Below, in pieces: positions 23,137 to 57,475 of a DNA stretch of 58,632 nucleotides (within the stretch, counting starts at the first letter, position 1; every line of letters begins with the position of its first letter). This stretch comes from Octopus sinensis (lineage: Eukaryota), in the NCBI RefSeq assembly GCF_006345805.1, contig NW_021833607.1, positions 1 to 58,632 on the forward strand, given 5' to 3'. Made by a program: the position numbers and the translations under genes. The notes under the pieces are model-generated. The model worked only from the letters and a program-made list of their open reading frames with translations. It was not told the origin of the DNA and made no database searches.

Positions 23137-23171
23137 GTTTCCGACGAAGAGCTCCGCTCGAAACGTCATAC
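23137..23171 (+). ncRNA. Candidate minimal type-I hammerhead (C4 variant)
   Basis: gttt-CCGACGA-a-gagc/tcc/gctc-GAAA-cg-TC-atac; stem I has one mismatch; GUC triplet. Confidence 0.6.
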
Positions 23172-23293
23172 CTCCCTGCTTCCATTCCTGAGCGCCTATT
23201 AATAATAATACTGTAATTGTTCCATTGTTGTTGTTTTTTTGTTTCCCGTTTGGATTAAAAAAAAATATATATATATATATACATATACGCACA

Positions 23294-24138
23294 TGAGGTC
23301 TGATCAATAAGTATCTGGACTGTTGCCATAGTAACGAAGCTAAAGCACGCCGAGTAAAGCCGCTTGGCAAAGATTCCCCTTGTGCATTATGTTTCAGCGT
23401 TCTCGCTCAAATCCACTGTTTACAGCAGTGCTTGGAAGAAAGTTGTGTAGCATGTGATCGTCGCATTGACCATGACAGAGAAAGTTGTCATAGCGATCCC
23501 TGCTCAGAGGCTTGTGCAAAGTTGTAGAAAGTGTATGGTGAGGTGTGTATGAGTCGCACACAAGTGTACGTGTGATTTAGACGCTTCCAAGATGGTCGAA
23601 AAAATGTCGATATTGACGAACGTTCTGGGAGACCTGCAACCAGCAGAACTGAGAAAAACATCGCAGATGTGCGTGCAGCTGCGAGGGGAAATCGTCGAAT
23701 CACCATTTGCGAGTTATCAGAAGATGTGCAGATTAGTTATGGTTCAGTTCAGTTCATTATCACTGAAGATTTGGATATGAGACGCGTGTCTGCCAAGTTT
23801 GTGCCAAAACTGCTTTCTGCTGACCAAAAAGGCATTCGGGTTTCAGTTGAGCAAAATCTACTTGATTGTGTCGAGAACGAGGAAAACATTGCGTAGGTCT
23901 CTAAGCAGATATCTTTGGCAAAATTTGATGCAGATTCTCTGGTCATCTTTATCTGTCATGGTCAATGCGACGATTACATACAACACACGTTCCTGCCAAG
24001 CACTGCTGCAGACAACGGAAGTAAGCTAGAACGTCAAAACAGTACGTATGCACAGCAAATTTTAAGGTCGATTCGTGCCAAATGGTTTCACTCTGCATGC
24101 TTTAGCGTCGTTACTATAGCACCAGTCTGGATACTTAT
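23294..24138 (+). mobile_element. Mariner derivative made of two 5' halves in inverted orientation
   Basis: Left TIR gaggtctgatcaataagtatctggactg. HTH transposase N-terminus (RGNRRITICELSEDVQISYGSVQFIITEDL...SAKFVPKLLS). 23885-24138 is a reverse-complement 5' end finishing in cagtctggatacttat. Confidence 0.85.
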
Positions 24139-25050
24139 ATATATATACATACATACATACATATAATATATATATATATATATATATATATATATATATA
24201 TATATATATATATATATATATATGAATAACAGGCTAAGTTCTATAGTTTTCGCAGTGAAGATTCGCATAGTTTTATTGCACACATATTTTTTTAATTCGT
24301 CCATACATTTGCTGTCTTAGGACTTTAAATAGTTAACACGCCGCCAGCGAATGTACTGGTATGCAAATGAGAGAAATCAGCGCCTGTAACAGTATTCTTC
24401 ACAAGTGTCTGTATATGCACGCATGTACGTGTATATGTTCATGTGTGTGTGTATGTGTGTGTGTGTGTGTGTGAGTTCGCATGAAAGAGAGAGAGAGAGG
24501 CATTTGTGTGAGCTTCTGGTTTACCTCAGATAGGAATAAGCATTAAAAACATAAAGATAAGCAGTTCCAAATAGAAAATCGAACATCAAATCAGGCTGCT
24601 TGCCCACATCCAGAATTCAGAATTGCATAACAATACGAAATGCGCACAAGACACGCTTCACTACCCTAGAGCATGTGACTAATAGACTAATATATATATA
24701 TATATATATATATATATAGATAGATATGTTGCCTTCGGTTGTAAACTGCGAATTGCCACCGTAATATTTATACATACATACGTATATATCTATATATATA
24801 TATATATATATATATATATATATATAATATATTATATATATATAATATATATATATATATATATATATATGTGTGGTGTGTGATGTATGTATTTTTTTTT
24901 CTAGTTTCAGCTCAGAGCTGCGGCCATGCTGATGCACCGCCGTTTTGTGCTACTGTTTATTACGACGAACCTCGTCTAATATGTGGCACTTGGTGTGAAG
25001 TGGAGAATGAGTTGTATATATATATATATATATATATATATATATATATA

Positions 25051-25279
25051 TTTCTTTATTGCCCACAAGGGGCTTAAACATAGAGGGGACAAACAAGGAC
25101 AGACAAAGGGATTAAGTCGATTACATCGACCCCAGTGTGAAACTGGTACTTTTATTTATCGACCCCGAAAGGATGAAAGGCAAAGTCGACCCTAGCGGAG
25201 TTTGAACTCAGAACGTAACGACAGACGAAAAACCGCTAAGCATTCCTCCCGGCGCGCTAACGTGTCTGCCAGCTCGCCT
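25051..25279 (-). mobile_element. SINE family B monomer
   Basis: Complete head-to-tail reverse copy of the 12440 unit, embedded in (TA)n. Confidence 0.9.
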
Positions 25280-25819
25280 ATATATATATATATAATATTA
25301 TATTATATATTATATATTAATATATATATATATATATATATATATATATATATATATATATATATATATATATATATATATATATATATATATATAATAA
25401 AAAAAATAAAAATAAAATAAAAAAATAAAAATAAAAATAAAAAATAAATAAAATAAATAATAGTAATAAAAAATATATATATTATATATATATATATTAA
25501 AATTCATAAGTTTAATTTATTAATTTAAATCATTTTTTAAATTTTAACTTAATTTAAATATTTTAGTTTGGATTATATATTTTATATTTTATATATATTT
25601 TTTTAATTAATTTTATTTCTATGTATTGGCTTATGATTTCACTTTGATTGCCTAATAGTGGTTTTATCTCTAATTAATATAATATATATTATACTATAAA
25701 ATTAGATTAATCCTAAATCTAATTTTTCCCTGTAAGTTGGATTTACTCCCTAATATTATTATTATTATATTATTATTATTATATATAATATATATATATA
25801 TAATATATATATATATCTA

Positions 25820-26220
25820 GGCGTAGGAGTGGCTGTGTGGTAAGTAGCTTGCTTACCAAACCACATGGTTCCGGGTTCAGTCCCACTGCGTGGCACCCGG
25901 CAAATGTCTTCTACTATAGCCTTGAGCCAACCAAAGCCTTGTGAGTGGATTTGGTAGACGGAAACTGAAAGAAGCCCGTCGTATATATGTATATGTATAT
26001 ATATATATATATATGTGTGTGTGTGTGGTTGTGTCTGTGTTTGTCTCCCCAACATCGCTTGACAACCGATGTTGGTGTGTTTACGTCCCCGTAACTTAGC
26101 GGTTCTGCAAAAGAGACCGATAGAATAAGTACTAGGCTTACAAAGAATAAGTCCTGGGGTCGATTTGCTCGACTAAAGGCATGACTGAAACAAGTAAAAG
26201 AATAAAAGAGTAAAAGAATA
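25820..26220 (+). mobile_element. SINE family A, near full length
   Basis: Same head, core and tail as the 17801 copy. Confidence 0.92.
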
Positions 26221-55330: not shown

Positions 55331-56293
55331 TAAATATGTCACTAGTATACCCTGGGTATTGAAAGCACGTGTGCTGAAAATATTATTCTTTTGAGAATGT
55401 CAAATAATGGAAGGCATATGTTCTTCTCTGTGCTTAATGCATTTTAAATGTTAATATGATTAATATGTCATATGCTTAACCATCATATTTTTCATATTGT
55501 ATTCAGAGTAAATACAGTTAATGACGCTTGTTGAATGTCATAGATTTTATGCCATAAGTTTGATGTTCTACGATTAATATCATATCTATAATCTTAATAT
55601 GTTGTACGTTATATATTTAAGGTGTGTTGTGTGTTAATGTCATATGTTTTATGCGATATACTTAACATCATGCTTATTTGATATATTTACTGTTATATGT
55701 TGAACATCGTATATATCTAGTGTGCTATGCATAACGTCACCCACTTAAAATGATGTATTTAATGTAATAAGTTTAATGTCAAATTTCAGATATGCTCAAC
55801 GTCAGATCTTTAGTTTTATACGTTTTGTGGCACTTTGAAAGCTTTATGGCTAATGACACGTTGCTTGGTGGGACGTGATTAATGCATCCTTAAGATCATT
55901 TCTCTAACGTCTTATATCTAACATCGAATATTTCACGTCACCTTCTTCAGTTGCAGAAATAGCCATGTCGTTAAGTAGTTTGCTTTGAGCTACATATATT
56001 TCATGGTTCGATCGCGCTGCACGTCATCCGAGACAAATGTATTTTCCTAATTACTTCGAGTTTAACAAGAAATTTTTGATAGACGGAAACGTTCGGATGG
56101 ATGGAATTCAATTAATCCATTGGCAAACCAGTGTACATAATGTGCTAAGTACACTGCTGGATATTCAACCATTACTCCACAGTCCTTCCCTTAACCCCTT
56201 TCCTGTCCAAAACATTTTCATAAGCTTGTCCTTAACACCCATGCTTGTTTTTAGATTTTTTGTTAGCCCTTGTTTCATACGTTATGAATAATA

Positions 56294-56838
56294 TTGGGTT
56301 GTCCGGAAAGTTCGTGCCGACTTTTAAAGGAAAGAAAAAGGTCAATAAATACCTGCCATTACATTTTTAATCAACCAAATATGAACCATTTTGTTGTACA
56401 ATGCGTCTCCATCTTTCCTTTAACTTGCAAATACCCTCTTCTTAGAATTGAGCTGGTTTCATGGCAAAGAATTCATTAAGGTATCTTTTTACGTCATCTA
56501 AGGAATTGAAATTTTTACCATTAAGACTACTCTGGAGAGACCTGAATAAGTGGACATCTGAATGAGCAATATCTGGTGAATATGGAGGGTGGGGTAACAC
56601 ATCCCAGCCGAGCTGCAGCTATTTTAGTATCAAGTGCCGAACTTTCCTATCTTCCATTTTAAAAGGTTACAGAATTAATACAAGTTATATGAACATAAAC
56701 CTTCTTCCACGAAAAGATAGCTTAAACTGTGCTCAAAATGGAGGTGTAGTCAAATACTATTTTATGGACTCAACCATGTTCTAAAATAAGTCGAAAGATA
56801 AGCTACTATAAATCGGCACGAACTTTACGGACAACCAA
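56294..56838 (-). mobile_element. Mariner deletion derivative with both TIRs (545 bp)
   Basis: TIR ttg(g)gttgtccg(g/t)aaagttcgtgccga with TA flanks; minus strand retains LPHPPYSPDIA...HLFRSLQ. Confidence 0.9.
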
Positions 56839-56974
56839 TATAAAGCTTTTCTTTCACAAGTCACAAGATACTCTGATGGTTGATAAAAGTTTGGGATGTG
56901 TATCATATATAATGCATGTTCATGTTTTATGTGATATACTTAGCATCATGTTTATTTGATATATTTATGTTATA

Positions 56975-57186
56975 GGCGCAGGCGTGACTGTTTGGTAAGA
57001 AGCTTGCTTCCCAACCGCATGGTTCCTTGGACAAGTGTTTTCTACTTTAGCCGCCGGCCGACCAAACCCTTCTGAGTGGATTTGGTAGACGAAAACTGAA
57101 ATGAAGCCCGTCGCATATATATATATATATATATATATATATGTGTGTGTGTGTGTGTGTGTGTGTGTGTGTGTGTGTGTGTGTGT
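56975..57186 (+). mobile_element. SINE family A, 5' half
   Basis: Head plus core, ending in the internal (TA)/(TG) tract. Confidence 0.85.
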
Positions 57187-57219
57187 ATATATATATATAT
57201 TATATATATATATATATAT

Positions 57220-57475
57220 AAAAGGAAATGAAGAAAATGCTGACAAAAGGATTTAAGTAAGGGAGAGTGTATTTAATTAGGTGAAAGTTCTTTTTACCGG
57301 TTGCGCATTTTTCTCTATAAGAGAAAAAAATCTATCAGAAAGGAACTCTATCTCTCTTTAAAAATATCTTTTGATAAGCATAACAAATGCGCAACCGGTA
57401 AAAAGAACTTTCACCTAATTAAATACACTCTCCCTTACTTAAATCATTTTGTCAGCATTTTCTTCATTTCCTTTT
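57220..57475. mobile_element. Palindromic element with 91-bp arms (57220-57310 / 57385-57475)
   Basis: One mismatch between arms; 74-bp spacer. Confidence 0.92.
57367..57406 (+). ncRNA. Candidate hammerhead-like motif, U3-A8 core with GCAA in place of GAAA
   Basis: tctt-TTGATAA-gcat/aacaa/atgc-GCAA-ccgg-TA-aaaaga; stem I weak. Confidence 0.5.

Follow-up and report, generated by a model that had tools for sequence, protein, structure and literature searches.

Contig NW_021833607.1 of the Octopus sinensis assembly GCF_006345805.1, analyzed here over positions 1 to 58,632 of the forward strand (the window), contains a series of inverted-repeat elements in which strings resembling the core of the hammerhead ribozyme are embedded. 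The question raised by this locus is whether these elements are miniature inverted-repeat transposable elements (MITEs) of DNA-transposon descent or the debris of Penelope-like elements (PLEs), retroelements that carry minimal type-I hammerheads. A sequence-only reading of the window had favored PLEs and had listed six motifs, with cores at 23141, 35419, 33837 (with a mirror copy), 37259 (minus strand), 45622, and 57371. All of these core strings and coordinates were confirmed, as was the location of five of the six motifs in inverted repeats, here called I1, E3, E4, E5, and E6. We estimate a probability of roughly 0.75 that the window is littered with dead-on-arrival PLE insertions and that its short palindromes are more deeply 5'-truncated versions of them. 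The DNA is AT-rich and eukaryotic throughout (26-47% G+C per 2 kb), with 62 (TA)n tracts of at least five units and many dispersed repeats.

The PLE insertion I1 and its hammerhead

I1 (31262-33964) is a genuine 5'-truncated, frameshifted PLE of the endonuclease (EN)-positive GIY-YIG type, accompanied by an inverted copy of its 3' end. The plus-strand copy (32299-33964) comprises the linker between reverse transcriptase (RT) and EN, the GIY-YIG endonuclease, and a 760-nt 3' untranslated region that runs up to (TA)n, while the left arm (31309-32298, minus strand) repeats the PLE 3' end in inverted orientation and with a deeper 5' truncation. The two arms, 31309-32298 and 32975-33964, are each 990 nt long and 99% complementary, with 8 mismatches between them. 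(TA)n adjoins both outer ends of I1. The right copy stops with CCTTAC at the tract, and the left copy runs on as TTATCATTTC...TTATTGAAC before reaching it; this one-sided 3' extension, or tail, is 47 nt long (31262-31308, minus strand), lies between the left inverted copy and (TA)n, and is found on the left copy only.

The EN open reading frame (ORF) (32714-33202, plus strand) was identified by Pfam, with a GIY-YIG score of 22.6 bits that equals the cutoff, and by 32 homologues. An exact look-up of the protein returned no identical record, the closest homologue being 64% identical. Its C-x4-C-x2-C linker, KKCARSNCGTC, aligns with an invariant CxxxxCGxC, and C34, G35, C37, Y69, R89, and H95 are among the residues that are invariant in the alignment. 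RT catalytic motifs are absent from the RT-EN linker frame (32292-32792, plus strand), which is not in phase with the EN ORF; three-frame translation revealed one frameshift near 32770-32790 that splits the two. This frame is collinear with the part of protein P0005 upstream of its GIY-YIG domain and shares 49% identity with it over 142 amino acids. I1 had been described as a Penelope with RT and GIY-YIG; the EN and the RT-EN linker are indeed present, but the RT core is absent. No RT domain was detected in I1 by Pfam, as expected for a 5'-truncated copy that begins at 32299, ~165 codons before EN. The linker appears to be of the Neptune type, a clade assignment that is made from the linker motif alone.

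In each I1 copy, a minimal type-I hammerhead with a U3-A8 core is positioned 84 nt before the copy's 3' end. The plus-strand motif (33832-33872, core 33837, predicted cut after 33867) is composed of helix I UAUUC/GAAUA, core UUGACAA, helix II GUCAU-ACA-AUGAC, helix III ACCGGU, and U17. Its 3' box reads GAAAA, with an extra A between A14 and A15.1 that is treated as an insert by the covariance model. The mirror motif (31399-31443, core 31436, minus strand) was recovered by covariance models. The minimum free energy (MFE) fold of 33837 shows helices I and II, and the dimer fold adds an intermolecular helix III. A second register of this motif, with G17 and the 8-bp helix III AACCGGUU, was rejected because helix I is then unpaired; G17 hammerhead variants can still be active (PMC3884650).

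As relatives of I1, 27 loci with genes for related endonucleases were collected from other genomes. None of them shares DNA with the window by BLASTN of its full length, so the loci belong to other species, and no PLE EN relatives were found in the bacterial/archaeal genome collection or in the viral collection. Wherever a relative locus extends far enough downstream, a minimal type-I hammerhead follows the EN stop by 34-273 nt; in I1 this distance is 635 nt. Most of the relatives' cores are canonical. UUGACAA is present in L013 and L016, both of which have helix III AUCGAU and U17; their helix II sequences are wholly different yet compensated (UCAGU/ACUGA versus GCCAAG/CUUGGC), and helix I is compensated as well. 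Nine of 10 relatives have a (TA)n tract that begins 45-148 nt beyond the hammerhead. The corresponding distances in the window are +84 for 33837, +132 for its mirror, +93 for 23141, +108 for 35419, and +111 for 57371 (where a short TA run occurs at ~+70), and 8.9% of window positions would meet such a distance by chance.

Two of the relative loci showed further arrangements. In L027, hammerheads at 10633-10683 (plus strand) and 10763-10808 (minus strand) face each other ~80 nt apart across (TA)n, the second with a decayed core, CUUAAAA; convergent as well as divergent pairs thus exist at microsatellite targets. In L003, the closest metagenomic relative (52% EN identity), positions 1861-1894 contain helix I, CUGAAGA, GAAA, AGCGCU, and U17, with essentially no helix II.

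Hammerhead motifs compared with chance

The proposed architecture was coded as a descriptor that comprised a Watson-Crick pair between positions 3 and 8, a pyrimidine at position 4, GA, A9, and a bulge of 0-1 nt. Helix II needed 3 bp or more, helix III had to be a palindrome of the form A...U, and helix I had to have no fewer than 4 of its 5 pairs; GAAA and H17 were also required. Two chance controls were used, namely 200 dinucleotide shuffles and, because shuffling breaks up palindromes, a scan of the unshuffled window with 207 decoys in place of the two conserved boxes. The full descriptor gave five matches in the window (33837, its mirror, 35419, 37259, and 45622) against 0.07 expected in shuffles, and the same descriptor with noncomplementary 3-8 positions gave none against 0.18. 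At a looser level, when only the core, helix II, and GAAA were demanded, 8 matches with complementary 3-8 positions were found versus 1.40 expected, and 5 with noncomplementary positions versus 3.96, which is chance level. The decoys produced a mean of 0.38 matches (n = 207), and only AT-microsatellite decoys reached 5. For any single relaxed-core match the expectation is ~0.01-0.02; the canonical descriptor's count of 1, at 45622, was reached in 3 of 200 shuffles. The motif set is a real signal above chance, and the expectation that such motifs would be commoner than in shuffled sequence is borne out by the descriptor search for the set, though unevenly by locus.

The individual motifs follow the common template of the sequence-only reading only in part. 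While the boxes are broadly present, GCAA stands at 57371, an insertion at 33837, and C4 at two sites, and no helix I is available at 23141. The 5' core box is canonical at 45622, contains U3-A8 at 33837, 31436, and 57371 and G3-C8 at 37259, and lacks U4 at 23141 and 35419. The 3' core box (G12-A13-A14, A15.1-U16.1, and H17) is intact at 23141, 35419, 37259, and 45622. All six motifs had been said to fold as hammerheads; MFE folding bore this out for 33837, 37259, and 45622 but not for 57371, which forms no helix I, nor for 35419 and 23141.

Covariance model 1 was built from six hammerheads of other genomes, none from the window, with the 3-8 pair annotated, and model 2 was built from 11 nonwindow sequences; 156 kb of PLE loci from other genomes served as control DNA. 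With model 1, 33837 and its mirror scored 32.9 bits (E = 5e-7), 57371 scored 23.3 bits (E = 2.6e-4), 37259 scored 16.9 bits (E = 0.016), 35419 scored 10.7 bits (E = 0.9), and 45622 scored 7.3 bits (E = 8), and 23141 gave no match. Model 2 returned 34.7 bits (E = 2e-6) for 33837 and its mirror, 24.0 bits (E = 1e-3) for 57371, 16.9 bits (E = 0.057) for 37259, 11.8 bits for 35419, and nothing for 45622. In the control DNA, nearly all matches below E ~0.05 fell behind EN genes, where a hammerhead is expected. Model noise starts at E 0.06-0.08, with matches on the minus strand of L010 and at 1953-2025 of the window, and 37259 is borderline for this reason. Rfam detected nothing above gathering scores in the window and no hammerhead in gathering or E-value mode, and at permissive E-values it gave only microRNA-like matches to TA hairpins. 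Nearly all of the positive-control PLE hammerheads were likewise missed by Rfam, the sole match being L004 with 24.8 bits against a cutoff of 52, which renders its silence on the window uninformative.

Across 13 distinct hammerheads (3 from the window and 10 from other genomes), 92% of cells are paired, compared with 60% in shuffles and 30-50% with slid partners, and double changes occur in 12 of 13 pairs; these figures are flattering, because the model had guided the alignment. Positions 3 and 8 pair in every hammerhead: 8 have CG, 4 have UA, and 1 has GC. This covariation supports assignment to the hammerhead class, with 33837 and 57371 as predicted members. Recovery of 33837 at E ~1e-6 by a model trained only on other genomes identifies its UUGACAA, on sequence grounds, as a true PLE-type minimal hammerhead of the already known U3-A8 variant, and we hold I1 with its two hammerheads to be PLE debris with high confidence. 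The model scores likewise assign 57371 to the homologues of PLE hammerheads, within the same known class.

Anatomy and origin of the short palindromes

E6, the element that contains 57371, sits in (TA)n. Its short inverted copy (left arm, 57220-57310, minus strand) adjoins the tract, and its longer copy (57311-57475, plus strand) consists of a 74-nt unique part and the right arm, the arms being 91 nt long and 99% identical. The hammerhead-homologous motif UUGAUAA (57364-57407, plus strand) has helix II GCAU/AUGC, ACCGGU, and A17, and it reads GCAA rather than GAAA because A13 is a C, at 57392, in both arms. Its MFE fold shows helix II and a 6-bp dimer helix III. Our confidence in E6 as PLE debris is good.

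E5 (45535-45762) has outer arms of ~85 nt and ~75% identity over its whole self-alignment, in which a center of ~60 nt matches poorly. It holds the only match to the canonical descriptor, a minimal hammerhead with the core CUGACGA (45617-45663, plus strand), in which helix I AGGUA/CACCU (4 of 5 pairs) and helix II AAGAG-CAAUAA-CUCUU are followed by GAA, helix III AUAUGCAUAU, and A17. Helices I and II form in the MFE fold, and an intermolecular helix III forms in the dimer. The palindromic helix III falls on the symmetry center of E5. A layout of two inward-facing copies was considered and rejected in favor of an asymmetric junction, with a long right copy that includes the hammerhead and a short left arm, given the poor alignment of the central 60 nt. 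The 45622 motif is probably a third PLE hammerhead relic, and confidence in E5 is moderate.

E4 (37139-37383) has 110-nt arms of 98% identity around a 25-nt spacer, and the direct repeat TTTCAG occurs at 37115 and 37394. The descriptor and MFE folding, together with a borderline covariance-model score, mark a candidate G3-C8 hammerhead on its minus strand (37219-37263, core 37259), which reads GUCA, GUGAACA, a bulged G, helix II GUCGC-9 nt-GCGAC, GAA, AAUAUU, U17, and UGAC. Helices I and II form in the MFE fold, with an intermolecular helix III in the dimer. We rate the chance that this motif is a PLE hammerhead as about even.

The two CCGACGA sites are weaker, both having C at the conserved U4. 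E3 (35321-35469) is a palindrome of 149 bp with arms that are 82% identical, and the 14/15 direct repeat that flanks it, CTTTAYTAATAAAGC, is itself palindromic and hence ambiguous. Its hammerhead-like motif at 35419 (35412-35455, plus strand) is mirrored at ~35330-35374 on the minus strand (core 35367), and the MFE fold contains neither helix I nor helix II. The solo motif at 23141 (23141-23255, plus strand) continues with a bulged A, GAGC/GCUC, GAA, ACGU, and C17 and then 93 nt and A9(TA)n. There the MFE fold forms the GAGC/GCUC helix II hairpin, the overall structure not being that of a hammerhead. Neither C4 motif has covariance-model support (E about 1 for 35419 and no match for 23141), and confidence in E3 and 23141 as carriers of PLE hammerheads is low, even though (TA)n follows each of them at a fitting distance.

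A palindrome with a perfect center at 35610-35811 has 101-nt arms of 95% identity and (TA)n at its center, and it accounts for strong though subthreshold false Rfam matches to several microRNA families (e.g., mir-5014, 76.7 bits versus a cutoff of 101). From 20256 to 23130 runs ~2.9 kb of C/T-rich low complexity with a strong strand skew (GC skew of -0.56 and -0.31 in two 2-kb bins), which yields a spurious 812-codon ORF; the solo motif 23141 begins right at its end.

In every palindrome the motif reads from the center to the outside, confirming the outward-pointing geometry of the sequence-only reading. The hammerhead core of E4, E5, and E6 is situated in the nonrepeated center, with the remainder of the motif extending into one arm, a layout that fits two copies of unequal length, the longer of which includes the hammerhead. 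The hammerhead stops 70-100 nt before the outer end in these three elements, which is within the range of the relatives. Judging from this anatomy and from the literature, the short palindromes are most likely deep 5'-truncated PLE products. In the proposed mechanism, the PLE protein would nick both target strands and prime reverse transcription on each, and the two cDNA copies would grow inward from the target ends and join at their truncated 5' ends. Such a join would leave an inverted repeat in which the 3' ends, and hence the hammerheads, face outward; the longer copy would retain the hammerhead, and the shorter would end inside or after it. The geometry matches the cutting and extension of both target strands by the PLE protein (PMC11167929) and the opposite-strand motif pairs described earlier (PMC4209133). 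The hammerhead of the master element, according to the literature, would self-cleave multimeric transcripts as a dimer via its palindromic helix III, whereas the window hammerheads appear to be relics, with A13 lost at 57371, a 1-nt insertion at 33837, and C4 at 23141 and 35419.

Several observations weigh against this account. Each short palindrome is single copy in the window by self-BLAST, with no family copies retrieved, and a protein search for family copies with a spurious 180-aa ORF spanning E4 gave no matches. Beside E3 to E6 or 23141 there is no EN or RT coding remnant, as TBLASTN of all EN homologues matched I1 only. E4 and E5 are not beside (TA)n, the 6-bp direct repeat of E4 could also have been produced by a DNA transposon, and the E3 motif is only ~15-20 nt from the palindrome end, unlike in all relatives. 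The model score of 37259 resembles that of the evident false positive at 1953-2025 (E 0.08). The 45622 motif is supported by neither covariance model nor by Rfam; its low model score is not decisive, since the models are narrow and a genuine canonical control (L002, 6583-6629) reaches no more than 12.4 bits with the same model type. Finally, apart from the hammerhead, no significant similarity links the 3' part of E6 to that of I1. When the 3' parts of I1, E3 to E6, and the relatives were compared, only the pairs L013/L016, L016/L001, and L001/L005 were similar, and the window elements were mutually dissimilar.

A possible, though doubtful, alternative is that the palindromes are dedicated nonautonomous families, retrozyme-like or SINE-like and derived from the pseudo-long terminal repeat (pLTR), that are mobilized in trans by PLE proteins. 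The longer copy starts no more than ~10 nt from helix I in E4 and E5 and 53 nt upstream of it in E6, possibly at a defined 5' end, but such an end and coincidence are indistinguishable from one window. The palindromes also have no significant similarity to the 3' end of the window's only PLE, yet their parental PLE families may simply reside elsewhere in the genome. Animal retrozymes are tandem hammerhead repeats that give rise to small circular RNAs (PMC5680766; bioRxiv 10.64898/2026.07.22.740005), and the non-LTR ones, which reportedly stem from PLE pLTRs (bioRxiv 10.64898/2026.07.22.740005), resemble the palindromes in being short and noncoding, in carrying a type-I hammerhead, and in their presumed dependence on PLE proteins. 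However, retrozymes form head-to-tail tandem arrays with repeats of ~170-400 bp, whereas the window elements are single inverted pairs with no tandem copies.

Descent from DNA transposons is, in our judgment, unlikely. It would make E3, E4, E5, and perhaps E6 foldback or MITE derivatives whose hammerhead strings arose by chance, helped by the palindrome stems. E3 to E6 are indeed near-perfect palindromes of 149-256 bp without coding capacity (E3 falling outside the 220-270 bp given by the sequence-only reading), and they share with MITEs and foldback elements the form of small, hairpin-forming, noncoding inverted repeats. The TTTCAG repeat at the extended ends of E4, the E-values of about 1 or absent matches of 35419 and 23141 with the PLE hammerhead models, and the palindromic helix III that the symmetry center of E5 supplies free to 45622 are all in keeping with this origin. 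On the other hand, full-architecture matches are ~70-fold above shuffles and far above the decoys on the same sequence, palindromes included; models trained on other genomes detected 57371 at E 3e-4 to 1e-3; and helices I and II of the E4 motif join spacer and arm, so the palindrome does not supply them. Each window element consists almost entirely of its arms, in contrast to the short terminal inverted repeats around a unique core in MITEs, no common terminal inverted repeat or fixed target-site duplication is visible, two elements lie in (TA)n with PLE-type ends, and the hammerhead motifs read outward in all five inverted elements. The one clear DNA transposon of the window is available for comparison at 34039-35298, between I1 and E3. 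This nonautonomous element of the Tc1/mariner type, with 27-nt terminal inverted repeats (CAGGGGTTGGACAAAATAATGGAAACA), a TA duplication on both sides, and a nonpalindromic 1.2-kb interior, is unlike the palindromes and has no sequence in common with them.

That all six motifs are artefacts produced when a permissive template is run on DNA rich in AT and in repeats is barely credible and is already refuted for 33837 and 57371: although no Rfam hammerhead was found, invariant positions are broken (U4 at 23141 and 35419, A13 at 57371), and 33837 has an insertion after A14, Rfam misses nearly all PLE positive controls too, 33837 lies at the expected place in a real PLE and scores E ~1e-6 with an independent model, and the enrichment and decoy tests speak against chance.

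Relation to described systems and other features of the window

Read as PLE debris, the window contains no new kind of system. The minimal hammerheads of PLEs (Cervera and de la Pena 2014, PMC4209133) belong to type I and have a helix I of 4-5 bp, a small palindromic helix III, an optional bulge after A9 (seen here at 23141 and 37259), and weak, dimer-dependent cleavage. They are located in the terminal repeats or 3' ends of EN-positive PLEs and include a U3-A8 class, the Cercyon elements of Schistosoma mansoni, with ~1,300 motifs; many stand alone, or two of them lie on opposite strands at a spacing of 100-700 bp, and these were described as "probably related to truncated PLEs." The window departs from them in the extra A of 33837, the C13 of 57371, and the G3-C8 (37259) and C4 (23141 and 35419) cores. 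Natural U3-A8 covariation in hammerhead cores was reported earlier (Perreault et al. 2011, PMC3088659), with the same swap of C3-G8 as in 33837, 57371, L013, and L016 but with no tie to PLEs.

I1 similarly resembles the Neptune/Nematis-type PLEs (Craig et al. 2021, PMC8557442; Frangieh et al. 2024, PMC11167929), which carry a C-terminal GIY-YIG EN after a Zn-finger-like linker, CX2-5CxxC. Insertions of EN-positive PLEs are strongly truncated at the 5' end, adjoin an inverted copy that is truncated as well, have a tail on one side, and, with the CX2-5CxxC linker, are biased toward (TA)n targets (PMC8557442); a one-sided tail of 30-40 bp is regarded as a PLE signature (PMC8557442, PMC11167929). 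I1 differs in having no RT core, in its frameshift, and in a tail of 47 nt versus 30-40 nt.

The sequence-only reading had expected a diversified set of noncanonical hammerheads that CUGANGA-based searches would overlook. This holds for the U3-A8 class, which such descriptors miss, but U3-A8 is already published, and G3-C8 and C4 are unproven. For G3-C8 the precedents are engineered double mutants with partial activity only (PMC11167929, PMC3884650), among them a C3G/G8C double mutant that partly restores cleavage by a PLE hammerhead, cleavage itself being dispensable for insertion in vitro (PMC11167929). In the literature searched, neither G3-C8 nor C4 was encountered as a natural core, and the 156 kb of other PLE loci contained no full-architecture motif of either kind. 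Only natural cores of these kinds would be new. We consider it improbable that PLE lineages of this genome carry cores beyond the described natural variants (G3-C8 at 37259 and C4 at 23141 and 35419), with palindromes of 150-260 bp as a recurrent by-product of two-sided priming that preserves them. If such cores were conserved or active, the range of natural sequences known for the hammerhead core would widen; otherwise, little is added to the literature of 2011-2024. Nevertheless, hairpin-like "MITEs" beside (TA)n in invertebrate-type genomes may be misannotated short inverted PLE insertions, and standard tools miss the class entirely, every window motif and nearly every positive control having gone undetected by Rfam. 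The recognition of PLE debris and hammerheads from raw sequence was largely correct.

Another repeat of ~0.6 kb or more is present at 23265-23886, with an inverted partial copy at 23944-24223, and again at 57520-58183, with 82% identity. One end always adjoins (TA)n, and 23265-24223 forms a PLE-like pair of one long and one short inverted copy. No hammerhead was found in the repeat, which may be the 3' end of another microsatellite-targeting retroelement, for example, of a hammerhead-less PLE clade.

Much of the window is occupied by two abundant families of dispersed repeats, with 77-92% identity and copies in both orientations. The first list of copies includes 8222-8570, 17730-18121, 25753-26213, 39597-39963, 40610-40984, 48709-48828, and 57021-57178, and the second includes 12445-12870, 25046-25278, 26774-27282, and 47475-47652. 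A tandem duplication of ~1.04 kb spans 15021-17085, its two units (15021-16062 and 16038-17085) being 96% identical. Two ORFs represent fragments of mobile elements. The one at 10014-10469 has a zf-RVT match below threshold (21.7 bits versus a cutoff of 27.5). The other, at 30635-31093 (…NYPFEFINSLTPSGMPPHRL…), has no Pfam match, and its product presumably resembles the C-terminal part of Helitron/PIF1-type helicases.

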